In this document: positions 19,414-47,951 of the stretch, in pieces
Position numbering within the stretch: position 1 is the stretch's first letter
Layout: every line of letters starts with the position of its first letter
Source: Lytechinus pictus
Lineage: Eukaryota
Assembly (NCBI RefSeq): GCF_037042905.1
Contig: NC_087252.1
Coordinates: 31,744,001-31,808,000, forward strand
DNA length: 64,000 bases
Direction of reading: 5' to 3'
Notes under the pieces: model-generated
The model's input: only the letters and a program-made list of their open reading frames with translations
What the model was told of the DNA's origin: nothing
Databases searched by the model: none
Program-made: the position numbers and the translations under genes

Positions 19414-26988
<7,575 letters not shown>

Positions 26989-28655
26989 CTACAAACAAGC
27001 AAAAAGTAAAGAAAAGGAATATTTTAGCTATCACATCCCCTGAGGAAATGAAGCCTAGGTAGAGTGGTGCTCCACAACCCGCTGGTCAGTGCTGGTGTAG
27101 TGCAGCTGCAGGACGCTTGTGCTTTATCATATTTAAACCCTATGTTGTATTATGTCTTACAAAGAGTTGCGATTGATCCAATCAATCACATCTATGGACG
27201 GCCAGCAACGTCAACATCCATTATGCATGTTTGTTCAAAATATTTTCTAACTATGATGTATGTTCATGCATTTTCTTGAAAATTCACTGTGCTTCTCTTT
27301 GGTTACAAAGGACATTGTGCAAATTTCCTGTAGAAAAAATTATGACACTGGTGGATTTCCATAGAGTTACGATTAATTGGATCAATCGTAACTCTTTGTA
27401 AGACGAGGCCCTGGTGTAGAAGGGCTATTACACCGGAAAGAGTAGGAGGAATGAGAAAAGAAACAAGGAGTAACACACCCACAATTTGACACGTACCGAG
27501 ATTAGACATGTCAAACTTCTTTCACAGGCAAGCATAATCAATCATCATAACTACAACACGTCACTATTTCAATAAATCTCTTCTCAAATGGCAAAATTGC
27601 CATAAAAATACATAGTCTGCACGATATTTCCAAATGCATGCACAGGCTTAGCTCAGATTTAAGAGATGGGTCACAAAAAAAGGGAAACATAGAAATTTGT
27701 GGTTTTGTTCCGAGTAGAAAATAACTAAAATATAAGAACTTTCTTGCAAATTTAGGGTCATCATGGTCATATCGTAGTTTAAAAAGAATAGGGTAGGGGG
27801 TCTAGTGTATTCCAATAAAATGACAAATTAAAAATATAAAAAGCAAAAGTAAACGCATTGAATTTTGCACAGTCTGTGTAGGAGGACTGCAAAACATCAG
27901 ATTTTTTTTAAAACTCCTCCAAAACAGTGGGTATCTTAAGATCTAGGACTCTAAGTTATATTTTCTTATAACGTTAAGTTTAGCTTCTGTTTTTTTTTCC
28001 GACAGGGCGAAATGTGAAGTCTGAAGACAAGCAAGCTTCTCTCCATCTATCTCACATCCCTCTCGACTCGGGCTCTCTCTAACAGTAACAATAATCATAT
28101 TGCAATTCACTAAAATGATGCCACAGTTACAGAACATGCTCTTTCTCAATTTAAGTCTTGATTCCCCATTTGCCATCGCGTCGAAATGAATCGCGTTGAA
28201 TTGAAATGTCGATCTGCCGATTCCGAATTCTGTCTATTTTATTAGGTGGTCTTATCGACCACCTAATTTTCTAAGCATCATACCTGCGAAGCTATTTATC
28301 AGTTTTACCTAGTTTTCGTCTCATTTGTGCAGAAAATTTAGCAGATCACATCAGATTCCCATGTTTCGATCGGCCACTACGATTCAATTAGGGTATACAC
28401 TACTCAAAAAAAGTTAAGGACCACTTTTTAAAACGTACATAAAGATTTTATACGAGGTGTTTTATTTCTGGAAATACCTCAGTACAACTGTCCTAAATGT
28501 CCTTAAACACGCTGTAATCAATTTCACGCATGGGTGGTTTCAGTTGTTGCACAATGTCTCTCGCATCACTGCACATCCTGAAAAGTGGGCCCCGAGGGGT
28601 ATCAGCTACCGACATGAAGTGGTAAAAACGAATGTCTGAGTGTCTTTCAGGCAGT

Positions 28656-29654
28656 TCAGTAACGAGTGTGACCACCTCCTGCAGCAATAACGGCTTCACA
28701 GCGCTGTCTCATGGAGCTGATGAGGCGATTGATGTCTCTGACGTCCAGTGCATCCCATGCAGCCTCCAGAGCCACACCCAGCTGCTGCAGTCCAAGTGGA
28801 TGGGCTTCGAGCTGCTCGAGACTCCTCCCCATCATGTCCCAGACGTGCTCTATCGGGTTTAAGTCCGGGGACCTCGCTGGCCACTCCATACGCTCAATCC
28901 CCTGGCCCTCAAGGAACTCGGTCACCACCCTAGCTCGGTGGGCACGGGCATTGTCATCCATGAAAATGATGTTTTGTCCCACATTTTCTGCAAATGGCAC
29001 CACTATAGGTTCAAGGACCTCATCCCTGTACCTCACTCCTGTCATTGCTCCCCCTGGGACCACGTAGAGACGAGTACGGTTGGCGTAGGTGATGCCTCCC
29101 CACACCATGACGCTGCCTCCCCCATAACGGTCATGTTCTGCAATACAGGGGTCTGCAAATCTCTCTCCTGGTCGCCTCCAGACTCTCGAACGTCCATCAT
29201 TGTGGTCAAGGGAAAATCTGCTCTCATCTGTGAACAGAACTCTACGCCATTGCTGTCTGGTCCATCTGACATGCTCCCGGGCCCAGTTGAGACGAATTCT
29301 TCTGTGAGCAGGGGTGAGTGGGACACACTGAGCTGGCCGTCTGGCATGCATATTGGCTCTGTGAAGTCGGTTACGGATTGTTTGAGTGGAAACAATCACT
29401 CCAGTTGCTGCAGCGAAGTCATTGTTGAGGCGGCGTACACTGTGAAAGCGGTTGCGGAGGTTGAGATTCGTCAAGTAGCGATCATCTCTAGGGGTTGTCG
29501 AAACTGGTCGGCCACTGCGGGGTCTCTCGGAGTATAGCCCTGTCTCTCGGTGTCTTTGATTTGCTCTGCTAATGACACTTTGTGACACGCCCATCATTCT
29601 GGCTACTCTTCGCTGACTGAGGCCAGCTTCCAGCATCCCTAGGGCTCTGGCTAC
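28656..29654 (-). CDS. Tc1-family DD34E transposase, open frame but missing the first 10 codons (first in-frame ATG at 29636)
   Basis: HTH region, VLFTDESRF, MDDNARAH and WPARSPDLNPIEHVW; 34 residues separate the second catalytic D from E. Confidence 0.88.
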   Translation of the reverse strand, partial: VARALGMLEAGLSQRRVARMMGVSQSVISRANQRHRETGLYSERPRSGRPVSTTPRDDRYLTNLNLRNRFHSVRRLNNDFAAATGVIVSTQTIRNRLHRANMHARRPAQCVPLTPAHRRIRLNWAREHVRWTRQQWRRVLFTDESRFSLDHNDGRSRVWRRPGERFADPCIAEHDRYGGGSVMVWGGITYANRTRLYVVPGGAMTGVRYRDEVLEPIVVPFAENVGQNIIFMDDNARAHRARVVTEFLEGQGIERMEWPARSPDLNPIEHVWDMMGRSLEQLEAHPLGLQQLGVALEAAWDALDVRDINRLISSMRQRCEAVIAAGGGHTRY

Positions 29655-29676
29655 CAACAACTTGCCTACAACAGCA

Positions 29677-30705
29677 ATGCCAAGACACCACCTAAGTGAA
29701 ACAGATGTAGCCAGAGCCCTAGGGATGCTGGAAGCTGGCCTCAGTCAGCGAAGAGTAGCCAGAATGATGGGCGTGTCACACAGTGTCATTAGCAGAGCAA
29801 ATTAAAGAGACCGAGAGACAGGGCTATACTCCGAGAGACCCCGCAGTGGCCGACCAGTTTCGACAACCCCTAGAGATGATCGCTACTTGACGAATCTCAG
29901 CCTCCGCAACCGCTTTCACAGTGCACGCCGCCTCAACAATGACTTCGCTGCAGCAACTGGAGTAATTGTTTCCACTCAAACAATCCGTAACCGACTTCAC
30001 AGAGCCAATATGCATGCCAGACGGCCAGCTCAGTGTGTCCCACTCACCCCTGCTCACAGAAGAATTCGTCTCAACTGGGCCCGGGAGCATGTCAGATGGA
30101 CCAGACAGCAATGGCGTAGAGTTCTGTTCACAGATGAGAGCAGATTTTCCCTTGACCACAATGATGGACGTTCGAGAGTCTGGAGGCGACCAGGAGAGAG
30201 ATTTGCAGACCCCTGTATTGCAGAACATGACCGTTATGGGGGAGGCAGCGTCATGGTGTGGGGAGGCATCACCTACGCCAACCGTACTCGTCTCTACGTG
30301 GTCCCAGGGGGAGCAATGACAGGAGTGAGGTACAGCGATGAGGTCCTTGAACCTATAGTGGTGCCATTTGCAGAAAATGTGGGACAAAACATCATTTTCA
30401 TGGATGACAATGCCCGTGCCCACCGAGCTAGGGTGGTGACCGAGTTCCTTGAGGGCCAGGGGATTGAGCGTATGGAGTGGCCAGCGAGGTCCCCGGACTT
30501 AAACCCGATAGAGCACGTCTGGGACATGATGGGGAGGAGTCTCGAGCAGCTCGAAGCCCATCCACTTGGACTGCAGCAGCTGGGTGTGGCTCTGGAGGCT
30601 GCATGGGATGCACTGGACGTCAGAGACATCAATCGCCTCATCAGCTCCATGAGACAGCGCTGTGAAGCCGTTATTGCTGCAGGAGGTGGTCACACTCGTT
30701 ACTGA
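29677..30705 (+). pseudogene. Tc1 DD34E transposase copy with native ATG but a nonsense codon (TAA 29803-29805)
   Basis: MPRHHLSETDVARALGMLEAG...SRAN*. The other arm has CAA at this codon; the rest of the frame is intact to the stop at 30705. Confidence 0.88.
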
Positions 30706-31257
30706 ACTGCCTGAAAGACACTCAGACATTCGTTTTTACCACTTCATGTCGGTAGCTGATACCCCTCGGGGCCCACTTTTCAGGATGTGCAGTGATGCGA
30801 GAGACATTGTGCAACAACTGAAACCACCCATGCGTGAAATTGATTACAGCGTGTTTAAGGACATTTAGGACAGTTGTACTGAGGTATTTTCAGAAATAAA
30901 ACACCTTGTATAAAATCTTTATGTACGTTTTAAAAAGTGGTCCTTAACTTTTTTTGAGTAGTGTATATCGGCGAACAACTAATACGACGGTTTTACATTT
31001 GCTCATTTGCACCCGTCTTTTGAAACCAACCGCCCGCGATACACTTAAGTTTACGGCCGATTCTTGTCGCGGTGGCGAAATATTTTGACTCTTCCAAATC
31101 AGTTCTATGATGTCAACATGCTAAATCATCGTCTCACTACTTCCACTACAAGCACCGGCACATGATTCCACGATTGACGACGGATATTTGTTCTAAAGCC
31201 ATTTCCTATCGGAAACGGGGCGAGTTCGGGTCTTGTCAAAACAATTTTGATAAATTC

Positions 31258-31493
31258 TGTAGCGGTCGCGCCCCCAGCTTGACCACTAGGTTGATACCTG
31301 AAGCTAGAATATAAGGAATAAGTCACTAACCAGTATTTTCCTGGAGTGATGTCCTAGTTCCTGTCTATTCCGTGTGAGTTCAGCTTCAAATACAATGATC
31401 CAAGGGATCCAACGTCCTCCAGCGTCTAAAAGGGGTCCAGCGCCATCTCCCGGTGGAAGACCTATATGGGGGGTGGGGTGACTTACTACAACA
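31258..31493 (-). repeat. 3' LTR (236 bp)
   Basis: Identical by eye to the 5' LTR once the insertion in the latter is removed. Confidence 0.93.
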
Positions 31494-32839
31494 GTCCCCC
31501 CCGTTCTATAAAACTCGGTCCCTCGAGTTTCCAACCCAAATGGACGCTATCCAAACCAGACAAAGGGAGGAAAAATTTTTCCACTCCCTAGACACCCCAA
31601 CCAGGAAACCTTATCTCCCAGCTGGGCATGAGCAAATACAAGCCCATTTAAAAATTCCCTTTGGTCTTTTATGTACACAATGCTCCTTAAAATTTTGCAA
31701 AAAGTACTTATGCAGCATTGTTCTGTCCCAAGTCTGCATTCCCAAAATTAATTATAATTTGCTACCCGTAATCAGCCATAAACAAATTCCGTTCTTTTAT
31801 AAATAAAAATCCAAAACACTTAGCACAACTGTGCTAAAAACTTGTTCAACACTTTAAATTTTAAAAACCCGTAACATGAAAACGGCAAAAACCCGTAATA
31901 ACACCTAAAAACCTAGAGTTTTGAGGTTCTTTTTAAAAAACCCACACAAAAACCCATATCCCAGGAGGGTCCCCCCTCCCCAGAAAGCTCCACTTTCCCA
32001 TAGCAGTGGGCTGCCGCTGGCCCTCCCCTGTCTTGGCACCCTCATACCCGGGCTGTGCAATACATAGCATTCCCGTTCGGTTGAGAAACTGGAGCACCAG
32101 TACCCAACCTAGGTCCCCCAGGTGCAGGAAGGGGGCGTCAGCGCTGCCATTACGCGGAAAGGGCCATTTAAAACACTTCCCTCCAAGTGAACCATGAAGC
32201 ATTCCCTACATGGCTTAAATATACAGAAAAGACAGAACACAGAGACAAAAGAACACAAGAGACACAGAGAGGAGGCGACTCAGCTGGTCTCCTCGCGTAC
32301 AGAAAAACATGTATGATCCTAAACGCTCAAACCTAACCCCGAATGCAAAGGGAACCGGAATCCCTTCGTGAACAATGGAGGACAGATCCCCTCCATTCCC
32401 CATAGAGTGCCAGATGGTTAATCCTAGCTCGCTCCATGAGAGTGAGAAACCTTATCTGCCGGGTTGAGGCGACAAGCTCTCCCACCTCGCTAGTGAACCC
32501 AGGGTAGGATCCTTCTCCTGTTCCACCCGTACCAGGTCGATGGGCAGCTGCCCATCGGTAACGCCCACTGGCCTCACCCTGACCGACTTGTACTGGACTA
32601 GCTCCACCTACACGCTGAACCATTAGCCCCAATAGTACGGCTGCTTGCCTGTAATCTGGTAGAGGAACCGCGATCCAGGTGAACCCATTTTTCAACAGGG
32701 AGCGATCCCGTCTCCCTTCCCTTCAATTTTTTCAGTTTCCCCCAGCACCTCAGAGCAGGTTACCTTAAGGTACCTATCAGATAGGTTCTGTTTTCCCAGC
32801 CCTGTAAACCGAACCGGGAACTAGGAGCAGTAAGCCATC

Positions 32840-33766
32840 CTAAGGGTTAAACATGAAATCCCCTAAACGTTGGTCTAAAATGCCGGTGATTCGCTTGAGT
32901 GCATTCGGGGGAACAATTACTCGCTTGTGCAAATGAACCCGGGCAATCTGCCGCCCAGGGTCATCACTATACCAAAGTGGAATCCTCTGACCTCCCAACT
33001 GCATATGCGGATCTTGGAGGTGAATCGCAGCCTTGCGCTTGCTGAGGAAATCTAATCCCAGGAGCATATGATCAGCTATAGGGGCTACATATACTTCCTC
33101 CGAGAATGTCTGGTTCCCAAGCTCTATGGAAAGGGGACCGACAATTGTCCCTCTCATCTTCATATCCCGTCCCGCTGCATGTAGGATCACTCCTCTCAGT
33201 TTAGGGGGCTGGGGGTCCAGTGACTGCAGGAGCCTATCTGAGATGATGGATACCTCGGCTGCGGTATCGACAACTGCGCTTACTGGCTGCCCCCCTATAA
33301 CAACCGAGACCTTGAGAGTAGAGCGCGACTCGAACCTACACACCACTACCTCTTCAATCCTGCTTGCACACCCCGGCCCAGGGAGAGCGTCTGGAACTGA
33401 TTCCGGACTTGCTTCACCCCGGTCTGTTGTTCGGGTGTCCGAGGGACCAACTGGATCCCCCGCCGCAGCCGCGGTTATGCCCTCTACATAAGTAGCTATT
33501 CCGGTTACATTATTCCCAGGGACTATCAGGCGCTCCGACACGCCCTCTGCTATTCCTTCAGATGAGCCTACGGATGGCCCCTCTGAGCTGCTTGCTAGCT
33601 TGGAACCCTCTATTTGGCCTCTGGCGGTGGGGGCCGGGGGCTGGCCAGCTCCTCCGACCCGCTGGAGTTTTCCTCCTCCTGGTCCCCTACAAAGGAAACT
33701 TGTACCTTGGCCCTGTTTTCCTGGACCGAAGGACAATTGTTCCTGTAGTGGCCAATCCCGCCGCAC
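32840..33766 (-). CDS. Retroviral-type aspartic protease ORF (truncated pol), -1 frame relative to gag
   Basis: VSAVVDTAAEVSII active-site motif and MLLGLDFL; overlaps the gag 3' end; stops before any RT motif. Confidence 0.8.
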   Translation of the reverse strand: MRRDWPLQEQLSFGPGKQGQGTSFLCRGPGGGKLQRVGGAGQPPAPTARGQIEGSKLASSSEGPSVGSSEGIAEGVSERLIVPGNNVTGIATYVEGITAAAAGDPVGPSDTRTTDRGEASPESVPDALPGPGCASRIEEVVVCRFESRSTLKVSVVIGGQPVSAVVDTAAEVSIISDRLLQSLDPQPPKLRGVILHAAGRDMKMRGTIVGPLSIELGNQTFSEEVYVAPIADHMLLGLDFLSKRKAAIHLQDPHMQLGGQRIPLWYSDDPGRQIARVHLHKRVIVPPNALKRITGILDQRLGDFMFNP

Positions 33767-35358
33767 TCATAGCACCGGTCCCGACCGGGTGACCTCCCGC
33801 GTTCACGCGCTGGTTGGGGCCTAGTCTGGATAGCCCCCAGGACCTTCTTGAGGTCCCGTTCCAAACCACCCAGACGCTGCAGATCCCGCTCGATGTGGCC
33901 CAAGCGTTCATCAGTCTTGCGTTCTAGGTTCACCAACCTTCGCTCAAGGGCTGCATTGTTCGCTTCCCCTTCAGGCTTACAAGAGGATTGGGGCAGTTCC
34001 ACTTTGCGGACCTCCCCTTCATTAGCCTTAGACACTGCCTTGGGACGCCCGTACATTGCACGGTGCACGTGTTGATGCCACTCAATATACTTAAGCGCCT
34101 CATTCACGGTAGATGGATTCCGCGTAAGCGCGTGGCACCCTGCCTCTCGGTTGAGGGCGCCCTGGCACAGGCGAAGGACCGCCTGTCTATTCGGGTAAGA
34201 CCCATTGACCCCTGGAAAAGCACACGCTGCTAGCTGGAGCACCCGGTCGGCCCAGTCTGGCAGGGATTCAGTGGGTCCCTGCTTGGCTGCCACAAACTCC
34301 AGCTGAGCAGATTCAGAGAGCCCTTCCTCCCCGAACCTGTGCTGCAGCCGGGCCACTAGACCTGCATATGGCATATTTGGCTCTTGGTCTAAGACCATTA
34401 GCAGATAATCTTCAGCCTTCCCTTTCAGGCCCCAGTATAGCTGGCTTACGCGCTCCATTGCAGTCCAATTATGGTGATCAGCAAAGGCGGAGAACTTTCT
34501 GAAGAAAGCCCTCCAGTTACCCTTGCCGTTGAAAGTGAGGGACTTTGGCAGCGTGTAATATGGTAATCCACCACCAGTCCCCCTTCCTGAGGAACCACTA
34601 GAATTCGCAGGTGACGCAGCCGGGCTACTAGGCGGCGAAGATGAACTGTACTGGGCTGGGCCTGTCATACCCGCCCGCACATTTCTTGCGCTGTAATCTG
34701 GGGTAGGGGGTGGGGCTGAGGAGCCCCTCCCGTCTCCTACCCTGGTCCTTATGCCTGCCCCTTGCCTCCCCCCTTGGGAGGGATGCCTAGCGGGGAGGTC
34801 ATCACCTCCGGACCATTCGCTTGAATCACCACTTACCTGCATGCCTCTATTCGCATAGGCCCCATTAGCCTCTTCGCCTATTAGGTGCCTGGGTCTGACC
34901 CTCGGCTCTACACCAACTCTCATACTTGCCCCTCGGGTGCTTGGGGGCTCGGGCCCCCGCTCCTCCCGGAAGTGAGATGAGCTGGTGCCCCAGGACCCAC
35001 TAGACTGGTTACTTTGACTTGACCTAGGGGGCTGATGTTGGTCATAGGAGTAAACACCCCCGGAACCTGCCACCCCATTTTGGTCAGACTCGCTATGCGG
35101 GGTGCTCGCAGTGAGGCGCCCCCTAGGGGTAATAAAAATACTGCCCTCTACCCCTTGGGTGCCCTCCGAAAAATCTACTCTTCGTGCTAGCTCCCTATTG
35201 CTGCATAGCGCTGGGCTGCTCTCAAATAGCTCACGGGTTATCTCCCCCTGATCCATTCGAATCCCCTGAATTATCCCAGCTAGGGCTGAACTTAGCCCTA
35301 GCGACCTGAACTCCTCAAAGGAGCACACATTGATAGGGATTTTCTCTTCCCCGTCCAT
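33610..35358 (-). CDS. Gag polyprotein (582 aa) with capsid-like region and CCHC zinc knuckle
   Basis: LTFNGKGNWRAFFRKF ... LKGKA ... LQHRFG ... QGPTESLPDWADRV capsid-like motifs; CYECGGIGHYRNNC knuckle; located inside the LTRs. Confidence 0.88.
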   Translation of the reverse strand: MDGEEKIPINVCSFEEFRSLGLSSALAGIIQGIRMDQGEITRELFESSPALCSNRELARRVDFSEGTQGVEGSIFITPRGRLTASTPHSESDQNGVAGSGGVYSYDQHQPPRSSQSNQSSGSWGTSSSHFREERGPEPPSTRGASMRVGVEPRVRPRHLIGEEANGAYANRGMQVSGDSSEWSGGDDLPARHPSQGGRQGAGIRTRVGDGRGSSAPPPTPDYSARNVRAGMTGPAQYSSSSPPSSPAASPANSSGSSGRGTGGGLPYYTLPKSLTFNGKGNWRAFFRKFSAFADHHNWTAMERVSQLYWGLKGKAEDYLLMVLDQEPNMPYAGLVARLQHRFGEEGLSESAQLEFVAAKQGPTESLPDWADRVLQLAACAFPGVNGSYPNRQAVLRLCQGALNREAGCHALTRNPSTVNEALKYIEWHQHVHRAMYGRPKAVSKANEGEVRKVELPQSSCKPEGEANNAALERRLVNLERKTDERLGHIERDLQRLGGLERDLKKVLGAIQTRPQPARERGRSPGRDRCYECGGIGHYRNNCPSVQENRAKVQVSFVGDQEEENSSGSEELASPRPPPPEAK

Positions 35359-35369
35359 GTTATCCTTAC

Positions 35370-35990
35370 CCTATGTGGTATTACCCTAGCAAGGTTACAG
35401 TTAGGCCCAGTAATAAGCCCAACCAAAAACCTGTTAAAATTATCCAAAAGTTATCCAAAAACTAGGTCTAAATGCAAACCCAATTTATTTATTAAATTCT
35501 TTCTAGTATTTTCTTTTAGCAATTAAAATTGCAAAAACCTGTAAAAAAGTCCAAAAGTATACCCTACTCAGTTTATGGTTAGGCACAATAATAAGCCCGA
35601 CCAAAAACCTACTTAAATTTATCTGAAAGTGGTCCCAATAAATTCTTTTATTTTTTAGCAACTAAAATTATAAAAACCGGTAAAGAGTCCAAAATTATAC
35701 CTTTAACAGTCAATGGTTAGGCACAGTGATAAGCCCGACCAAAAACCTGCTAAAGTTATCCAAAAAAGCTATCCCAAAAAATTAGGTCCAAATGCCAACC
35801 CAAATTTATTTTATAACAATTCTTTTATTTTTAGCAACTAAAATTATAAAACCGGTAAAAAGTCCAAAATTATACCTTTAACAGTCAATGGTTAGGCACA
35901 GTGATAAGCCCGACCAAAAACCTGCTAAAGTTATCCAAAAAGCTATCCCAAAAAATTAGGTCCAAATGCGAACCCAATTTATGGTATAAA
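35370..35990. repeat. Degenerate tandem repeat (~140-180 bp unit, ~3.5 copies) in the LTR-element leader
   Basis: AAGCCC(G/A)ACCAAAAACCT recurs at about 35416, 35593, 35731 and 35906. Confidence 0.8.
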
Positions 35991-38984
35991 AGTCTAGCTT
36001 TTATTATTAATTAGATTAGTTTAGTCCGGTTGTTGTTAATAGTTTGCGCTAGCACTGCCAAAAAGAATGATTTTAGTTCTAAAAATATTTATATTAACCT
36101 CTAAGCCTAACTTGTCTTTTATTAATTTACCTATTTATTTTATTAATCCTCGAAGCTGGTTCTATCACACTGGAGTCCAAGTTCAGCACACAAAATATTT
36201 CATGCACACCGAGTCACCCCACACTCTCTCTCAAATAATCTTTCTTTTTCTTTCTTTGATTTTTTTTTTTTTTTTTTTTTTCTCTGAACTCCCCACTACA
36301 GTGAGTGGGTGGGTTCACACACTACGCCACCTACGTCGCAAACACCCAACACCGTATATCCACACACACACTTCCTACCCCACTCGAAAGTGAACGAGTG
36401 GGGCTGCCCGTGTTCTAGATCTAATCTAGATATGCCTAACAATAAACCCAGCTTCGAGGAGCAAAACAACACGCTAAAACAACCACTAAAAATTCAAAAT
36501 ATCCGAAATAGGCAGGCGAGAGAGGATTGGGATAATGCCCTACCTTTGTTGGTCAGTCTGGCTTCCCGTCCTACTCGCCCAAATAATCGCCGTTGTTTAC
36601 CCGTATACGTGCGATGGATTGGTCCGGCCTGACGTCAGTTCGGATCTCAAACTAGACCCAAACGTTGAGCCGACGATGTAAAACAAGATGGCGCCGGTCG
36701 GTGGCAGAGAGAACCAATAATATCTCTCCGCCAATAGATCGCCGTGAAATCTTGGATCGGGCCGCGCGCTTTTACCTAGCCGGAACACACACACTCTTAC
36801 GCACCTCTCACCCCAACAAAAATAGTTCACTCACAAATCACTCGCAAAACGACACAAAAATCATCCAAACACCCAAAATCACAAGCAAATCACACAATCA
36901 CACCAACGTGAAACACAGTCCACAACTAAAAACGGATATTAAAGCACAAAACTAAAACAAACTCACAACACAACAACACGTGTGTTCTCCCCCCTTTTCT
37001 GGAAATTTCCGTCACGGGACCGGAACTACCATCAGTCCCCGCGACGAAAACCTTACCAAAAAAGACAGGGGACGATTGCCTAAATATGTCCCAAATCAAG
37101 ATTTAACCTCTCAATTCAGGACAATCGCAAACATGAAACAAGGGACAATATTCATAGAATATACGCAATACGACAAAGCTCTGAATCTAGCCTTATCAAC
37201 TGTAATTAGCCCAATCTAAAACTGATTTCTCGCACTCGAGCGGCGACCATTTCCCCCCACGCAGCGGGGCATAGGGATTTGCTCGTCCGATGCGCAATAG
37301 GGGGCCGTTAGCTCGCCGCGAGCAGGGACTCGATTTTAAGGCGCGCGAGAGCGATCGCGCGCTACATGCGCGCCTTAATCCATTTTAGGTAGCGCGATTA
37401 ATAGCGCGCCTCGCGATCGCTGAGCTGCGCAGAAATGCCTAAAGTCCCCCTCGAAATCACCCAAAATCATTGCCAAGTGATAACAACTCAACGGCCATGT
37501 TCGAGCTCCGCTTACCATTTAAAAATCATCCAATATCCACACTCAAATTCATGAATAAGCCTTGAAAATAGCGAGGAGCGCAGTTTCAAATTCCGAAGTT
37601 GCGTCTTTTTTTCTGTACCACGTATTTCCATACACATGGTACCAGGTATGGAAAAAAAAAATCAACGCAACGGTCGGGAAACAGTTGCATGTATAGCCTA
37701 GGGTCCGTTATGACTACCACGCACCATGTGCAATTTCTAATGCACATGTTTCCCCTACAGATATCACAATTCAGAGTCTAGTAACCTGGCATTGGTGAGT
37801 TGTCATTCGGCTTTGCTTTTCAAAACGGCCTATTAACATCCAAAATAAGTTACCATATTTATTAATTATAGCTAAAAAATCATTTATTTTCTTTTTCTAG
37901 GGGATGAGGTAAATATCAGAAAATAAATCATCAAACAAAGCTCCATCTATTTTACAAGGCCGGCGGCAGGCTCACGCACGAACGCATTGGCGCATGTAGC
38001 CAGTCGGAGCTCTGTCTCTCTGCCAGAGCTCTGGGGGACAATTCGCTCAGTAAAGGCCTCAATGATGGTGATTTTCTGTTTCAGACAGAGTTTACATTTC
38101 AGGTATATTATTCAAAACTGCCAATAAAGTTTGATGATTTCTTCATTGTCATGTATATTCAAGTTCTTAATGAATACATTCTCACCAAATTTAGACTCCC
38201 CCATAGAGAAATGCAATTTTCGTGGAGATCTGCGTTTTCAAAGAACTTCAGGAAAAGTTAGGGTATGTGGGCCTTTATTACATGTACATGGCCGAGTACA
38301 GGGTATTGTACTGGAATATACGGAGTAGAAATTAGATATTGAATTAATTTATATCCAAGTCCAACTCACAGTCACACACACACGCACAGTGCCACACACC
38401 CACACACACCCACATCCAAGATTCTAAGCATGAAAAAATAACTTTAAAAACCATACAATATTTAACAAAAAGTAATAATTCATTAATAAGTGAACAGGTA
38501 TTCCTGAAAATACAAAAAAGTAGTATTTAAAAAGAGCCCCCGAAATGCAAAATTAGCCCCAAAATTTGACCAATAAATAAAAAAATGGAGCCCCCGAAAA
38601 AAAAAATTGTCAGTGACTTAACTTTTAGCCAAAGTCAAAACCTCACTCAAACAGGTTTTACAATCTAATTACAATACATTGTAAAACAATTATAAATATT
38701 GCATATTCGATTGTTTCCTTCCTTTGGTTGTTGATTGTAACTTAGTACATATATTTCCTCCATCTGTTTTGTTAATTGGACAAAAAGCTCCCCTTGTATG
38801 TTGAAGAAGAGCTTTTTGCAGTGCTCCTCTACCGCTCTCCTTAAAAGTTCTAGGAGAGCTTTTTATTGCTCCCCTCACAATTATAAAACTGAGTCCCTGC
38901 GCGAGACAATTATACCCCAATTAATTTCAATAAATTTGCCTAAAATGCCCACAAAAGCAGACACAGTCAGGCTCGCAGCGCCAC

Positions 38985-39675
38985 TGTAGCGGTCGCGCCC
39001 CCAGCTTGACCACTAGGTTGATACTAGACAGCTGGCAGCCGTCTGTTTCGAGGAGTTTTTTAACATTTTTTTTATTTTTTATTCTCCTCGTACACAGACG
39101 GCTCGCTAGCGTGCAGCCACCATTAGGGGACTTGCAATGCGAAATCCCCCCGTCGGGGCTCTTCAATTTTTGTCTTTAATGAATAAAAATTTTGAAAATT
39201 AACGCGACCAAAATGCAAATTAATATTCCCTCTTGGCATTAATTGCCCCAAAACGGAGAAAAATCAAGTTAAAAGGAACAAAAACAGTGACTTACCTCGG
39301 CTGTCGCGCAAATTCACTTCCCCGTTTTATCCGATCTTAAGTACATAAACATATGGCCATTGAGTCCCCTGTACAGATCGCGCTAGAACTTCGGTCTCTG
39401 TATTTGGTGAGTGAAGCCAACGGAGTTCAGCTGAACAACCAACATAACAGAGACCGAAGCTTTTGGTCTAGGTTGATACCTGAAGCTAGAATATAAGGAA
39501 TAAGTCACTAACCAGTATTTTCCTGGAGTGATGTCCTAGTTCCTGTCTATTCCGTGTGAGTTCAGCTTCAAATACAATGATCCAAGGGATCCAACGTCCT
39601 CCAGCGTCTAAAAGGGGTCCAGCGCCATCTCCCGGTGGAAGACCTATATGGGGGGTGGGGTGACTTACTACAACA
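38985..39675 (-). repeat. 5' LTR, interrupted by a 446-bp insertion
   Basis: Matches the 3' LTR on both sides of 39025-39479. Confidence 0.92.
39025..39470. mobile_element. Small non-autonomous DNA element, TAGAC..GTCTA ends, 9-bp TSD GGTTGATAC, hairpin at each end
   Basis: The empty site is visible in the other LTR. TSD at 39016-39024 and 39471-39479. Confidence 0.88.
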
Positions 39676-42600
39676 ATTCTACTAAATTTTTGCCTTCCCC
39701 CTTCTTTTTCTCTTGTAAAATCCATTTTTACCGTTCCTATGGACACAGCGCCTTACTCTCCCGCGCGTATCGTTTGTAATACGCAATAATTTTAATGCGC
39801 GCAAGGTGGTCGGTTTCAAAAGAGGTGGTCGATATGTGTTGTTGTTGTTGTTGTGATATGTGGCACATAGAACTTTCCCCATAGGCACACAGTAGACGGA
39901 TTCCCTGCACGCTGATTGGCTGATCGCGCGACCCTCTTCCCTTCCTCGCCCAGCGCTGTGTGTGAGAATCTTTACACCGCGCGATCGGCTGACTCACGGA
40001 GCACTACACTCTGTCGGGTAAAGATGCCAGCGTGTAGATTTCGGGCACATGTTCGGATGATATCGGCACTTCGGCAGGCAGGGTCCGAAGTCTAAGCAAA
40101 ACATGTGGTTTTCATCGGGTTACGCAAGGCCGAAGGCCGCTTGCATAAATTGTATTTGCATAGAGTACAGTGCACAGCGTATATATAATGTACATGTATA
40201 CTTGTCTGTACTGAATTCTGCGTTGCCTCCGCGATAAATGAATTTCCTGATAGACTGCCTTTTGATTAGATGCTCGGCGCAGACTTCATGCATGTATATT
40301 AATGTCCTACAAATTAACTTTGTTTTTTAATAGAATCATTTGATGTTCAAAAAGGGTGTAATTGTAGGATGTTTGAACTATAAAAGGCAGTACATTCTAT
40401 AAGAGCATATATTTTGTATTTTTTGTGTGCTCACGAGAATTCATGTGACACTTTGTCTGGAGTGTGGGAGTGCTTCTAGACTAGCATGAGTCTACCCTGT
40501 GTATGTCTGGACAGGTTGTGTGTCCGGACGATCACTTTTAGAAAGTCATATAGAAAAATTTACAAGCGAAGTTTCTTCAATTTTTAGTACAAGATATTAG
40601 GAAATATTATAGAGAACAAGATGAGTACAACCATTGAATTCATACTTACAGTGTAATGCAAAGACGAAAAAGAAGCCTTAAAAAATAGTGTCCGGACGCC
40701 CAACCCCCCCCCCCCACAACTACGAGAGTGAGAACGAATGTGACCTGATTGTGTGTTATAATTTTCATATTTTATTTGACTTAATTGTTGGTTTATAATT
40801 CAATCATTTTTCATTAACTATTTGACAATTTTCTTTTTGCTGGACAATGTCATGAGTATTCAATATATTTGTATTATGCACTTTTACTTGAGCTAGGCTG
40901 TGTCATCATTTTTCAGACAGGAATCTTAGCAATCAATTTTAACAGAAAATATTTTTTATCTAAAATGTATTTTACAGGAGATATCAAAGTGATTGTTTTC
41001 AGGAAGGTGGTTTAATCAACGATCTAAATGATTATTCAAAATTCACTATAGTCATATAAAATATATTTCTGTATTAAAAACTTATTTTCATTGTCAATAT
41101 ATTGAGATTGATGAAACACATGTAAACATTGACTGAAAGGTTTTCAACATTATTACAGCTAGTATTATTGTTCTACTGAACAATTCTATAAAAATATTGA
41201 GCTTTTAACTTTTTGTTTATTTCGTTCATGTTCATGAAAATATTCTACTTTTGTATTTTATTGGAAAATGAAATACTCTCGATCTCTCCCAATACCCTCA
41301 GTCCTAAATTTACAATAATTGGTTATCATTAATACCAATATTGTATAGGGTCTCAACGTGATGTCATTGTTTTGGTGTTTTTTTTCCTCACTTCGATGTG
41401 CTGAAAAAATAGAAATTCCAAAAAAGGGTAGACTCCGATCTCCCTGCTCTAATCATGGACTAATAATCTGAATGCTGATGGTAATGTAATTTTCTTACAC
41501 ATTTTGAAACACGTTGCATAATATGGAATGTATATATTAGTTGACAAGAATATCTGACCTCTATAATATATCAAAGTGCACAAAATATTTTATGTAATAG
41601 CTTTCAGGCTTTAACATGTCACAGCCACGGCAATGGTGACATTTCATGAAATAATTGTGAATGTATTTATGAAGATGTCGTCAGTACCTTACAATGTAAA
41701 TAAGATACCATATATGTAATGTTATCTGTGGTGATTGGGAAACCTATACCTTGTATCGGGAGGGGTACGTGATTCAATAGATCCCAAAAGAATTCATATT
41801 CAACAGTATGACAATTAGACTCCATGAAGCATATGATGGAATTGAACAATTCATCGAATGATATGGATTTCAAGTTAATTGATTTGTCTAAACGTTAAAG
41901 CTTGTATTTCGTCTGTTCATCCCTATAGATCTACACAAGTTGATATTTTTATTTGAATATCGTTGGGAATTTCGATGAATTATTTTTCAATTTCAATTGT
42001 CATTTTATATTTGAATAACGCTTCAAATAGTTATCTTTACAACGGCATCGGCCTAATTTGTAAGAGTACCTATTTATGAAATGAAAGTTTAAATGTGAAC
42101 GAGAACACTCGGCCCTAAAGCCGATGGCACGTGATCGAATTAGTATTGCTTGAAAATGATGTTTCCCGAATTCCCGTCATAGGGTGAAATTCTCTTCTGT
42201 AACTTTAAAACTGAACTTCTATTGAAATTTACTGAATCACTCACCTCTCCACACCCATGGTATAAGAAAACATTTCCCAAATCGCCAAAATTAAGATGTG
42301 AAGATTTATCAACCATCATCGTGATCAGCAGTGACAACATTCGCCTCGAACACCCCCCCCCCCAACACACACACATGATCTCAACATCCCCTCTTCATTT
42401 CTGGACCCCTTCCTCTTTCGCTCGATCGCTCTTTGCGACCCTAGCTCCTACCCCCCCCCCCCCTTCTCTCTCTCGTACACTACACGCTGATGTAGAGTAG
42501 AAACAGTAGCTCCATAAGTGTGGTATGCAAAAAGAATTAGGCCTGTCAAACTACTTACAAGACATTTATAATCGTATATTTTAAAAATTATGTATGCATT

Positions 42601-43139
42601 ATTAAAACATTCGTGATCATCGGTGAACAAAGAACAATAAAAATCACCGGTGGATCGGGGGGGGGGGCACAGCCGGCCCGTGCGCACCCCCCCCCACCAT
42701 TCAGAGGCACAAGTAAAATTTGTAATGTAAAAATAGTGGTAAACAGAAGCGTGCGCCCCCCCCCCCCCTCCGATAGTGAAGACCAAACTCCCCTTAATTA
42801 TTTTTGGTTGAAACCCTTTTCTATTTTTTTTTTTTTTGCTTGTCAATTTTTTCCTCGGGGAAAACGTGCCCTCCCCCCTTCGAAAAATCCTGGATCCGCT
42901 CCTGATACGAATGTAAATACTTTTAATTCATATTAAAAAGAAAATAATTGGATACGAATCATAAACTTTAACAGGAAGCTATTAATTATGAAAGTTATAT
43001 TTTATCCGAAATTGAAAAACATTTAATGTATTACAGAGAAGTTTGGGACCCCGTCTAATGAATGCAGATGTCCATTAATTATTTGAAGGCCTGCAAACAA
43101 TTCATCTTGGGATTTCACGGACCGAGGGGCTATGGTCCT

Positions 43140-43692
43140 TACACCTCGGTCACATTTGCTCTACGGCGGCCGTACGGCGAGTCGAAACAGTCGTTTTAAT
43201 ATTGTTTTTGTACCAGCTACATTATACATGTAAGATTTAATTTGTACATGTAAGATTATGTACAATATAAAAATGAATAAAAATACTGTTTTCGGCTAGC
43301 CGTGCGGCAAATGTGACCGAGGTACGAGTCTGTCATCGACATGAAAAACAATGGTTGACAGAACCAAACACGCATTCAGAAAATTAAATCACAATTTCAA
43401 AAGATGTAGAAAGTATGGGGTAAATTTATTGATCAATTTGAGAATAAATCTGGCTTTAAGTAATTTCGTTGGACTTAATATCAATCCTTTCCAGTTTTCT
43501 ATTAAAATATGTTCTATAAAATTTGACGTCCTTAGTAGTCACATTTGCTCTACGGCGGTCGTACAGCGAGTCGAAAACAGCCGTTTTACTCATTTCTTTC
43601 AAACTATGTATACAACACTGGTACAAAATAATGTTAAACTGCCGTTTTCGACTTGCCGTACGGCCGCCGTATAGGGGAAATGTGACTGGTGT
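43140..43692. mobile_element. Two copies of a short palindromic MITE (about 43140-43324 and 43536-43692)
   Basis: GTCACATTTGCTCTACGGCGG ... AAATGTGAC in both copies. Confidence 0.65.
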
Positions 43693-45604
43693 AATAAACT
43701 GACATTAAAATAGTAAAGTTGATGCAGTTGCAAATTGTTAAAATCTTTATTAAAAGAAATCATGATATAGGGTTTGCTTACACTTTACAGTTTGGCTTTG
43801 ATTTATCTTGATGATTTTCATTATTCTTTTCATGATAATTTTTAGTTAAAACAGCGTTTTACTATATTCCGTGAAAGTGAATGTCCTTCCAGAATTCCAT
43901 GTTTTTAATAATTCATACTGAACTGGAAACTCTTATTAAAGGCAAATTTAATGCATAAGAATTTATTGAGCATATGATAATAATTCAAACAATGCTGTTT
44001 ACTACATGAATCCCATAGTAGTTTAAACAGTTTAATAAAGTGTTTAAAATCTGAAACAATCATGCTTTATTTATTGATAATTAAATATTAGAGTTTATAA
44101 AACTTTGTTGTTTATAAAGTTGTTAAACACTTAAAATGTTTAAACAACTACTATGCAATTCACATATTAAACAACGTTGTTTGAATTATATTTTAACAAT
44201 GAAACAACATAATACATAAATTAATTACAAATAAATCACAAGAATATTATGACCATACATATAAATAGCATTTTACAGTGCATCATTGTTAACAGAAACT
44301 GTTTTTCGACCCTTCTCAGCATCATATTCATAACCTTTTTAAATTATTCACTTATTCAATTTTAAGTAAAAATAAAGTTGAAAGATTATCTCATAAGACA
44401 ATAAAAATGTTTTTATATCGTCTTGATTTAGTGATCCCCAATCCTTCACCTTCTTGAGCAGTTGTAAAATGCGATATGAACTTGTAGCTCTCGACCTTTG
44501 CTCCGTTTGGGTCTTGTGAACAACAGTCTTTCAAGCAGTGTCAGTCAGTCATCTTCGGATTATATGCTGTAAATTATACAATGAAAATAGACCATAGTTT
44601 TAACTTTTGAGTTTGATTTATTGCTAATGTCATAATTGGTCATTCAAAGATTTAAAAAGAAAATAGATAAGAAAAAGAACAGGGCAGGAAAATATTTATG
44701 ATTTTTGCAAAACAAATACTGAAGGAAACAAAATCAAAATCAATCTCCATCCATATCAATTTGGTACACTTCTGCACTTCAGTGATTATAATTTGCATTA
44801 TTTTTCAATTCAATTTCCTGTATTTTAGGGTCTAATTATTGATATCATCATGTCTCAAAAATTCCATTGACGATTTCGCGATTGACTGTCCCTGGCCTTA
44901 CCGAAAAAAATAAAAACAGTGTCCAGTTTTAGAAGTTAAATCAGTATCGCGAAAGTTCCAACAAATAAAATGCCCAAACTTATATTCCTAAAATACTACG
45001 AGTATGATATTCGCCATTCCATTAATACAAGCAGAGCTTCAATTTCAGAGCCATACACAACAACAGGTGCAGCTGCCATTCATTACATACACGCCCCAAG
45101 GCCGCATGGCCGAGCTCACACACATTCCACAGCCATTCACGAACCATGCACGAACAACCGAGCGAAGCCCGATCACAACACAACGTACGCCATGCTTTAT
45201 ATACACCATTGCGGACTAAGCACAAACACCACCGCAAAACAGTTCACAAAATAAACCTCGGTGTAGACGGTTTTCCGTATGTCGCTCTGTACCAATACAT
45301 GTCGCTCACATACACTTTGCACACATTGACACACAGTAAACAACGAACACAGTCGTGCGATTTTCACTTCTCGACGGTAAATATCTTCAAAAATATGACT
45401 TACCAAATGACGAGAAGTCCGCAAAATATCATCAGATTTTCCGAGGTAATGTAGCTACACCGTATGAAGAAAATGAGATTTTCAACTCGAAATCTTGAAG
45501 GAAATACGTCGTGTTTAGTATGAGGTTGATCGGTGGTTCGCAGAGAAAATTATCGCACTACATAGGTTTTGTATTATGGGAAAATATGCAAATGAGAGCC
45601 AAAA

Positions 45605-45700
45605 CACCCAATGAGATCACAGCTCAAGATTTGTGAATGAAACATGACGTCACGCACTACGCTGGCGATCGAACGAGCGTACTGCGCATGCGCGGGTTTC
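45605..45700. promoter_or_regulatory. Candidate promoter: CCAAT, CRE and NRF1-type motifs in a CpG-rich patch
   Basis: CCAAT at 45608, TGACGTCA at 45645-45652, TGCGCATGCGC at 45683-45693. Confidence 0.4.
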
Positions 45701-47951
45701 CTGTACAATTCTTCTTTGTGTGTGGTGGTCTCACTATACGCTTGCACTAAGAATTGGACAGACACCATCAAAGATAGGTGGGACCGAAGCGAAGAGGAAT
45801 ATTGCTTTGTCATGCATTCGTAACTGGGAGAATTCCTCTCGAAATTCTGCTTCCAATTCGTTGTATTGAATTTCATAATCAACTTAATACATTCATTACA
45901 TATTTAGTACTGTAAAATAAAGCTACATACCTTTTTAGGAGTGACAGCAATGCCAATTTCTTCCATAATTCAGCGATGAGTTTCCTCAATAGAAAGTCAA
46001 AAATCAAGAAAGGCAGAAATTAAATAATTTTCGTTGTAAGATGGCGCTATTTACCTAAACGAAAAAATGAGCTTGAGAATACTTTACGAGAAAATGTTAT
46101 GCGTACACATTTTAGTCACAAAGTCACAAACACCCGGCACAAACAACATTTAATTTTCTATTACATTATTGTGATTTTCATTACTTTCACACTTGTGTAT
46201 GACCTTCGTCTTTCGTATACACTACTAACGTTAAAAGTAATCAAAATTCAAATGCAGCATTGAAAATCAAAGGATTCTTGTCAAAATGATAAGTAGGGCC
46301 TATATCTCGTACATTTTTTTAAAATGGATCTATTCAATCTATAATTACACAAATCTTATTAATTTTTCCTTTGTAAGTCAATTTTAAAGTAATTGCTCTT
46401 CAAGTGTAGACATGCCCATATAGTCCTAAGAACGATTTTAATTCAAAACTAAGAAGGGTATTAAGTGCATGGTGCATACTTTTTTTTTCTTTATCCTATA
46501 TATTTTTTTTCTCTATCCTATATTTGTCAGTAAAATGTTACAAAAATATGGCTAAAAATCACTTATTGATTCTTGTTAGACCTTTACTCTGGTATGAAAA
46601 CAAATTTATTGGATTTAGTGGCAAGAATTTCACAGTTCAGGATAATAGAGTGGAAAATTCATTTTAAAAATAAAGATTACGTTCTCAGTGTTTGAAAATA
46701 CATATCTGCATCCTTAATTTCTCCATGCCTGGCTGGGAAAGTTCAATCTAACGATGGTTGGTCTTAATAAAAGTAGGAAAAAAAATAAATAAGAATATAG
46801 GCCTATTGGTCAAGATTTGATGAATATCCATGGATTTATCAAGTTTTTCCTCTGTTGACGTCACATGCGAGCAGGTATATCATGTAATATGATAATTCTG
46901 AATAATTTTATTTTTTTAATGGGACATGATGAAATATTTTTAATACAAGGGGTATAAAATAAATAAAATAAATGAGAATTCTTAAAAAAACAAAAATGCA
47001 TACACTGTTCATCTTTGACGCCATAAAATCAAAACTTTAAAACTAGCTCTCTCACCCTCAATCGATTGTTCTCCCCGGCCCACTCCCTCTCCTCCTCCGT
47101 CTAAGCTAGAGCTCCGACCTGGACCCGCTAATTCTTCCTCCTCATATCCTGCTCTCTCCCTCAGTATTATTTCCCATACCATCATTCACTCCCTCCCCAT
47201 TCTTTCCTCATCTGTCCCTCTCTCTCTCCCATCACCCTCTCCAAGCTCTTTCTCATCTCTCATTCCCTCACATCTTTCCTCCCTCCCTCATTTTCGCCTC
47301 TTTCTACATCTTTTCTCCCATCTCCCTCTATACTCCTGCCCCACCCCATCCACCTCTTTCTCATCTCTCGATCACTTCATCAATCTCTCATTTTTGCTTC
47401 ATTATCCATCTATATCTACACGTACGTCTATCTACTTCCAGTTTTCTTCCTTTCTCTCACTTCTCCTCCTGATCTCCCTCTCTCTCTCATCTCTTCCCCT
47501 CCCTCCCATTCTCTCTCTCATCTCTTCCCCTCCCTCCCATTCTCATCTCTTCTCCTTCCTCCCCTTCTTTCTCTCTCTAATCAGTAACTGGTGTGTTGGC
47601 TCAGTTGCTAGAGCATCCGTCTCACAACTGGGAGGTGAAACCCCGGGCGTGTCGGACCAAAAGCTTCATCGATCTGGCGCTGAACAGTGGCTGCCGGGCC
47701 CACAATCAATTGGGCAAAAAGAATTTTCGAAGTATTTCCATTTTCAGACTTGCATTTTGAACAACAAAATATGGATTTTTTTTTCATTTTATCTATTGTT
47801 GTCCCCCTTCTCTGCAATTTATCACTCACTCTTTCTCCCACTCTCATTCTCTCTGCTCCTCTCTCTCGTATCTCACCATCTCCATCTGTGAACAAGATAA
47901 AATTGTCATGGAAACCCACTACACTCTTCTTCTTTGCCAAGGAAACCTTAA

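Follow-up and report, generated by a model that had tools for sequence, protein, structure and literature searches.

A foldback Tc1 transposon in the first intron of sea urchin PSMC4: structure, probable origin and predicted hairpin RNA

What is a palindrome of two transposase genes doing inside a sea urchin proteasome gene: has it been kept as a source of hairpin RNA that silences its own transposon family, or is it the remnant of a transposon rearranged during repair? Here, we address this question for a 64,000-nucleotide stretch of the Lytechinus pictus genome (RefSeq assembly GCF_037042905.1, contig NC_087252.1, positions 31,744,001 to 31,808,000 of the forward strand; hereafter, the window, in whose numbering all coordinates are given), which contains a head-to-head foldback Tc1 element of 2,566 bp at positions 28398-30963. 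The element lies within PSMC4, an essential, constitutive housekeeping proteasome gene that is expressed in all cells. Our analysis confirms that it is a real foldback derivative of a Tc1 transposon, and we consider it probable that it is now an inert relic, any hairpin RNA made from it being a by-product of its position rather than a selected function.

Architecture of the foldback element

In a repeat search of positions 27000-32500, the largest inverted repeat by far was the foldback Tc1 palindrome, with arms at 28394-29654 and 29707-30967 (1,261 nt each, 99% complementary and 52 nt apart). These arms count the outermost TATA on each side; the element proper spans 28398-30963 and its arms are 1,257 bp long. 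Base-by-base comparison of the two arms reveals 9 substitutions and no insertions or deletions (99.3% complementarity), and the repeat finder detected no tandem sub-repeat families inside the arms. The parts of the element, assigned from the sequence and from alignment to complete canonical copies of the family, are as follows (TIR, terminal inverted repeat; UTR, untranslated region; ORF, open reading frame).

28396-28397, no strand: left TA flank (target-site duplication), followed by CACTACTC as in all 16 canonical copies
28398-29654, minus strand: left arm, an inverted copy of the 3' 1,257 bp of Tc1, carrying the 3' UTR, the 3' TIR and a transposase ORF truncated by 11 codons at its start
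28398-28592, minus strand: 3'-type TIR at the left end, ~195 bp, with ~99% identity to the canonical 3' TIR and 83% to the canonical 5' TIR
29655-29706, plus strand: spacer of 52 bp, comprising 23 bp of the canonical 5' leader and the beginning of the transposase gene of the right copy, from the ATG (29678) through the first two bases of codon 10
29707-30963, plus strand: right arm, the sense copy, with the transposase gene, 3' UTR and 3' TIR
30769-30963, plus strand: 3'-type TIR at the right end, from alignment to canonical copies
30964-30965, no strand: right TA flank (target-site duplication), from the sequence and the canonical copies

At its termini, the element thus opens with TA and CACTACTC and closes with GAGTAGTG and TA, and the sequence flanking the insertion on either side of the TA is CAATTAGGG and TCGGCGAAC. 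The central junction, GGCTACCAACAACTTGCC, occurs once in the window, where 0 occurrences are expected by chance, and is absent from all 26 fetched loci; no second copy of the arm was found elsewhere in the 64-kb window.

Both arms encode a Tc1-type transposase, with Pfam matches to PF01498 (HTH_Tnp_Tc3_2; E 3.5e-18) and PF13358 (DDE_3; E 3e-19), and in the catalytic triad, 34 residues separate the second D from the E (FMDD-N...NPI-E, counted on the translation). The family is a young Tc1-like DD34E family of the Tc1/mariner superfamily: the TA duplication, the paired HTH and DDE domains and the DD34E spacing are all present, and what the element lacks is the canonical layout of one 5' and one 3' end, both of its ends being of the 3' type. 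The left arm holds a stop-free ORF of 334 aa on the minus strand (28656-29660), without the first 11 codons. The right arm and the spacer together provide a full-length frame that starts with the ATG at 29678 and is broken by a TAA at 29803-29805, a stop codon that arises from a private C>T change at 29803. Six of the 7 coding differences between the arms alter the protein, one of them being this stop, and no intact transposase with a start codon is encoded by the element. In exact-protein look-ups, neither the left-arm ORF nor a 40-aa ORF that spans the junction was on record. We infer that the element is now non-autonomous and drifting neutrally.

The ordinary members of the family locate the break with single-base precision. 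A protein search returned intact 342-aa transposases with 98-99% identity (P0001 and P0002), and the public contigs of these transposases yielded 16 complete canonical copies. All 16 begin and end as the foldback element does, with the same terminal sequences inside the same TA dinucleotides; 13 of them are ~99% identical to the arms and 1,730 or 1,896 bp long, and the other 3 represent a 1,583-bp subfamily with 90% identity. The canonical 5' TIR, ~200 bp in length, is just 83% identical to the canonical 3' TIR. In all canonical copies, homology to the window element starts exactly at 29655; therefore, the element lacks the 5' 421-587 bp, that is, the canonical 5' TIR and leader (421 bp of the 1,730-bp form or 587 bp of the 1,896-bp form), and carries the inverted 3' 1,257 bp instead. 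The canonical leader itself (L001:607-1001, L015:438-831) consists of two or three tandem units of ~166 bp, each of which repeats part of the inner TIR together with a pseudo-start (GCAATGCCAAGA), and the difference between the 1,730-bp and 1,896-bp forms is one such unit.

At the breakpoint (29654/29655), the window reads GGCTAC/CAACAAC, and its parents read GGCTAC/ATCTGT (on the reverse strand) and TACAAT/CAACAAC. No base is common to both parents across the break, and the join is therefore blunt, with no microhomology at 29654/29655 in either parental sequence. One 3' copy extends 52 bp beyond the other at this junction. A preliminary description of the locus had proposed 1257-bp arms of about 99% identity around a 52-bp spacer, clean TA flanks, and two 3' ends with no 5' end, and each of these structural points is upheld by the alignments.

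Among 24 fetched contigs that bear relatives, no foldbacks were found, all copies being ordinary or partial ordinary ones, although short-read assemblies would collapse palindromes. The family also turns up in other records: the sea spider Nymphon striatum has an annotated transposase of at least 90% identity (KAG1665120.1; P0121, in the cluster of P0001), DNA copies ~99% (L017, L020) or 90% (L007-L009) identical to the arms are present in marine metagenome assemblies, those of Tara Oceans among them, and runs X7-X14, labelled as five different organisms, contain it as well. Either horizontal spread of this Tc1 family or contamination of some records may account for this.

Position in PSMC4 and the predicted hairpin RNA

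The gene structure around the element is as follows (LTR, long terminal repeat; MITE, miniature inverted-repeat transposable element).

45931-45966, minus strand: PSMC4 exon 1, coding part MEEIGIAVTPKK, then a gtatgt donor in phase 0, from the N-terminus match and the sequence
26991-45930, minus strand: PSMC4 intron 1, 18.9 kb, which holds a MITE and an LTR element of 8.4 kb (31258-39675) besides the palindrome
26897-26990, minus strand: PSMC4 exon 2 (31 residues), from the sequence, RNA coverage and alignment to human PSMC4

A six-frame search of the window for the conserved PSMC4 N-terminus gave a single minus-strand match, ATGGAAGAAATTGGC..., at 45966. The peptide of exons 1 and 2 is colinear with human PSMC4 residues 1-45, the top match among PDB sequences (E 0.076 with a 43-residue query), and the remaining exons, which contain the conserved Rpt3 motifs and are intact, extend on the minus strand from 26314 to 19417, where the frame closes with EFYK and a stop. 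A library search with a PSMC4 exon recovered vertebrate-like representatives only. Given exon 1 at 45966-45931 and exon 2 at 26897-26990, the palindrome lies inside intron 1, at a distance of 1,407 bp from exon 2, and exon 1 sits 15 kb beyond it. The preliminary description had placed the element 1.4 kb upstream of the first PSMC4 exon; the distance stands, but the exon in question is the second. Its further argument, conditional on exon 1 lying beyond the element, gains ground from the location of exon 1 deduced here from the sequence.

Contigs from runs X1 and X2 and raw RNA reads from X46 cover exon 2 and end at its borders. Depth in X1 is 19.7 across the 82 + 13 nt of the first two bins, which correspond to 26897-26990, and this run behaves like an RNA library at PSMC4. 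In RNA libraries X2 and X46, no exon-like coverage was seen in 26991-28225, save for the MITE and a short low-depth X2 patch near 27900; coverage of exon type was restricted to exon 2, and 27458-28225 showed none of it. Other potential starts of PSMC4 were rejected, namely, minus-strand ATGs at ~28175, 28330 and 39725, with no in-frame donor or no PSMC4-like peptide, and a CCAAT/CpG-rich stretch at ~39900-40000. A promoter-like, CpG-rich stretch with a CCAAT box (AGCCAATCAG) is found on the minus strand at 39700-40000, within intron 1 and directly adjacent to one end of the LTR element. The sequence GCGCCATCTT, at 46037-46046 on the minus strand, precedes the PSMC4 start codon by about 75 bp; we take it to be a YY1-like motif, which would fit a housekeeping promoter.

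Since the palindrome is located in intron 1 of a constitutive gene, it is probably transcribed with the PSMC4 pre-mRNA, into a predicted hairpin of ~1.25 kb. When the 2,566-nt RNA is folded in the PSMC4 sense, the minimum free energy is -2,724.6 kcal/mol and 1,250 of the 1,257 mirror pairs form, with uninterrupted stretches of 553 and 371 bp between mismatches. In this orientation, the left arm supplies the sense and the right arm the antisense transposase sequence. That PSMC4 pre-mRNA could give about 1.26 kb of double-stranded RNA (dsRNA) had been suggested earlier, and the predicted stem of ~1,250 bp agrees with that figure.

Intron 1 contains other repeats as well. The MITE-like element (27154-27404; ~250 bp, with 34-bp TIRs that are 94% complementary) is extremely abundant in DNA and RNA runs from two organisms, with a summed contig depth of 1e4-1e6 versus ~20-100 on the neighbouring exon. 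Directly to the left of the palindrome, the segment 28226-28395 is itself a repeat, with a depth of ~800 in X1 and ~10,000 in X26 and several consistent base differences; it includes a small hairpin, TTAGGTGGTC...GACCACCTAA, at 28242-28266, and alignments to it break off where the Tc1 was inserted. This insertion may thus have gone into, or next to, a different mobile element. On the minus strand, the LTR element (31258-39675) has an ORF for a Gag of 582 aa, which contains a CCHC zinc knuckle, and another of 308 aa that is protease-like; no reverse transcriptase or integrase ORF was seen among the ORFs of this element.

Probable origin and present state of the palindrome

The history of the arms can be read from their differences, the polarity of which was established by aligning them with 16 copies that are ~99% identical (13 complete and 3 partial). 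Five substitutions, the stop included, are private to the right arm and 4 to the left. Wherever the family is polymorphic, both arms have the same base, that of the family consensus, and no derived state is common to the two arms alone. Drift since the duplication amounts to ~0.36% per arm. The differences are consistent with derivation of both arms from a single source of consensus type, followed by drift in the absence of selection. Furthermore, the presence of private changes in each arm argues for an old, real structure over an assembly slip, and the foldback arrangement appears to have been inherited for a long time.

How, then, could such an element have formed? Gaps left by Tc1 excision are filled with other copies as templates. 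In the scenario that we favour, a double-strand break or an excision gap would have opened in a Tc1 copy, repair synthesis or a broken end would have produced an inverted copy of the 3' part, via fold-back or template switch, and end joining would have closed the break. The near symmetry of the product, with arms that end 52 bp apart, favours one fold-back-type event over two independent truncations. The product could have formed in place, or its two 3' ends could have carried it to PSMC4 as one transposing unit. Mos1 with two copies of its preferred end transposes 26-fold better, and transposition of such forms is also reported for Sleeping Beauty (PMC4505599); given that two identical ends are competent in these related elements, movement of the palindrome as a unit is possible, and judging from the DNA, the outcome would look the same as formation in place. 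The likeliest fate of the hairpin would be editing, or degradation with the excised intron, and the whole would then be a relic in which transcription of the arms is incidental.

Several points weigh against this account. Fold-back priming normally leaves microhomology, and a microhomology-free junction is atypical of it. Simple degradation of the intronic hairpin is an assumption, and the splice from exon 1 to exon 2 is deduced indirectly, from the sequence and from coverage that stops at the exon borders. In the comparison with public reads, which was restricted to 26882-29760 and in which the abundant MITE swamped the tables of joints and loose ends, no reads or contigs were seen across 29654/29655 or either flank junction, the contigs all being canonical. 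The junction 24-mer, GGCTCTGGCTACCAACAACTTGCC, had no match in metagenome contigs either; the ordinary leader was likewise unmatched there, and this blank is therefore uninformative, the junction searches having covered collections without this genome. As for the reads, arm contigs of runs X1 and X2 (organism A) have the ordinary 5' leader beyond the spacer and thus represent ordinary copies, and organism F carries relatives that are ~5% diverged. An opposite-strand joint at 29654/29706 was rejected as evidence of the palindrome, because an ordinary copy gives the same signature on 26882-29760. Public reads over the arm neither confirm nor deny the palindrome.

Could the locus instead be a host-beneficial silencer, an animal counterpart of the maize locus Mu killer? 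The PSMC4-driven hairpin would, in that case, be diced or fed to the PIWI-interacting RNA pathway and would silence active Tc1 members in trans. We regard this as unlikely, even though a transposase and TIR inverted duplication does lie inside a housekeeping intron, a long near-perfect dsRNA is predicted, and the intact 342-aa transposases at 98-99% identity in public data attest to a young family, so that there would be something to silence. There are precedents, too, in Mu killer (PMC3440606), Ac/Ds (10.1101/2020.01.07.897926) and Caenorhabditis elegans Tc1 (PMC3878927). However, the arms evolve neutrally and the locus bears no mark of conservation, the intron that holds the hairpin is removed in the nucleus, and the RNA-library contig over the arm is of the canonical type, with a 5' leader. 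Of what defines a Mu killer-type locus, the inverted duplication of the transposase of an active family is present; as to transcription through the whole repeat from a host promoter, the sequence and the exon-limited RNA coverage place the palindrome in intron 1, and among the RNA data none of the transcripts could be assigned to it. On balance, the palindrome may be regarded as a reasonable candidate for a hairpin-RNA source. The more far-reaching proposition, that it is a natural constitutive hairpin-RNA gene, active in every cell, whose small RNAs would restrain a young and possibly horizontally spreading Tc1 family, and that faulty repair by the transposon itself gave rise to it, is in our view distinctly unlikely.

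We give little credence to a history in which two Tc1 copies were inserted head to head by local hopping and a later deletion took both 5' ends and the intervening DNA, such that the palindrome was never a single mobile unit. A blunt, microhomology-free junction is the expected scar of an end-joined deletion, and the TA at each end would be trivial, since every Tc1 insertion has TA. Yet the deletion would have had to end within 52 bp of mirror-symmetric positions in elements of 1.7-1.9 kb, a coincidence of ~5% by a rough estimate, and the two arms share the same haplotype at all family-polymorphic sites. It is very unlikely that the palindrome is an artefact of assembly, produced by a chimeric long read, by one that folded back or by the wrong joining of two Tc1 copies: public runs showed canonical-type contigs only and no read-level support for the palindrome, but the arm differences are substitutions only (9, no indels) with private changes on both sides, both ends coincide exactly with transposon termini, each next to TA and followed outside by continuing intron sequence, and the central junction offers no overlap that an assembler could use.

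Related systems and significance

An element of this form is not without parallels. The palindrome belongs to a known kind, derivatives of DNA transposons that carry an inverted duplication and lie where read-through from a host promoter would be expected. In maize, Mu killer (Muk) consists of part of a transposase gene duplicated in inverted orientation, together with two copies of one TIR, and is thought to be transcribed into a multi-kb hairpin by read-through from an adjacent host gene (PMC3440606). The element described here resembles it in being an inverted transposase duplication with two copies of one TIR, at a place where host transcription is predicted. By contrast, Mu killer belongs to the Mutator superfamily and acts in a plant through small interfering RNA (siRNA) and RNA-directed DNA methylation, its silencing being genetically proven, whereas the present case is an intronic sea urchin Tc1 known from its sequence only. 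In the Ac/Ds system, aberrant transposition or repair makes inverted duplications that are transcribed from the element or from a flanking gene, giving dsRNA and siRNA (10.1101/2020.01.07.897926). The likeness lies in the inverted duplication of transposon sequence through aberrant transposition or repair; unlike our element, these are large composite insertions of the hAT superfamily that are tied to re-replication, and both siRNAs and silencing have been demonstrated there.

Closer in superfamily is Tc1 of C. elegans, for which, in the summary that a review gives of Sijen and Plasterk 2003 (PMC3878927), read-through RNA initiated in flanking sequence folds back and the resulting dsRNA feeds RNA interference. 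As the review outlines it, that system shares with ours the superfamily and the fold-back on inverted repeats, but its stem consists of the short natural TIRs, in contrast to the ~1,250-bp stem predicted here, which spans the whole transposase gene. Classical foldback elements include Drosophila FB and the sea urchin TU elements (Liebermann 1983, cited in PMC4079207). By the description available in the citing source, they are comparable in having very long terminal inverted repeats that snap back (1,257 bp in the present element), and TU also comes from a sea urchin; the arms of FB and TU, however, are described as modular short tandem repeats, whereas ours are a duplicated transposase gene with its 3' UTR and TIR. 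Finally, engineered mariner/Tc1 elements (PMC4505599) likewise carry two copies of one end where the natural pair is unequal, and such pairs cleave and transpose, sometimes better, the difference being that these are short inverted terminal repeats on laboratory constructs.

Little is settled about the way in which hosts come to recognise a DNA transposon that has just arrived, and the best-documented answer is the hairpin RNA of accidental inverted duplications in plants. The PSMC4 locus is a clean animal test case, with a near-perfect 1.25-kb inverted duplication of a young Tc1 transposase in the intron of a ubiquitous gene and with nine copy-specific bases that allow reads to be assigned to the palindrome. 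Should the arms give rise to no small RNAs, a long intronic hairpin in an essential gene would have been tolerated over the long term, which bears on dsRNA sensing and on the stability of palindromes. If, conversely, arm-derived small RNAs exist, the same silencing route would be shown in a deuterostome.

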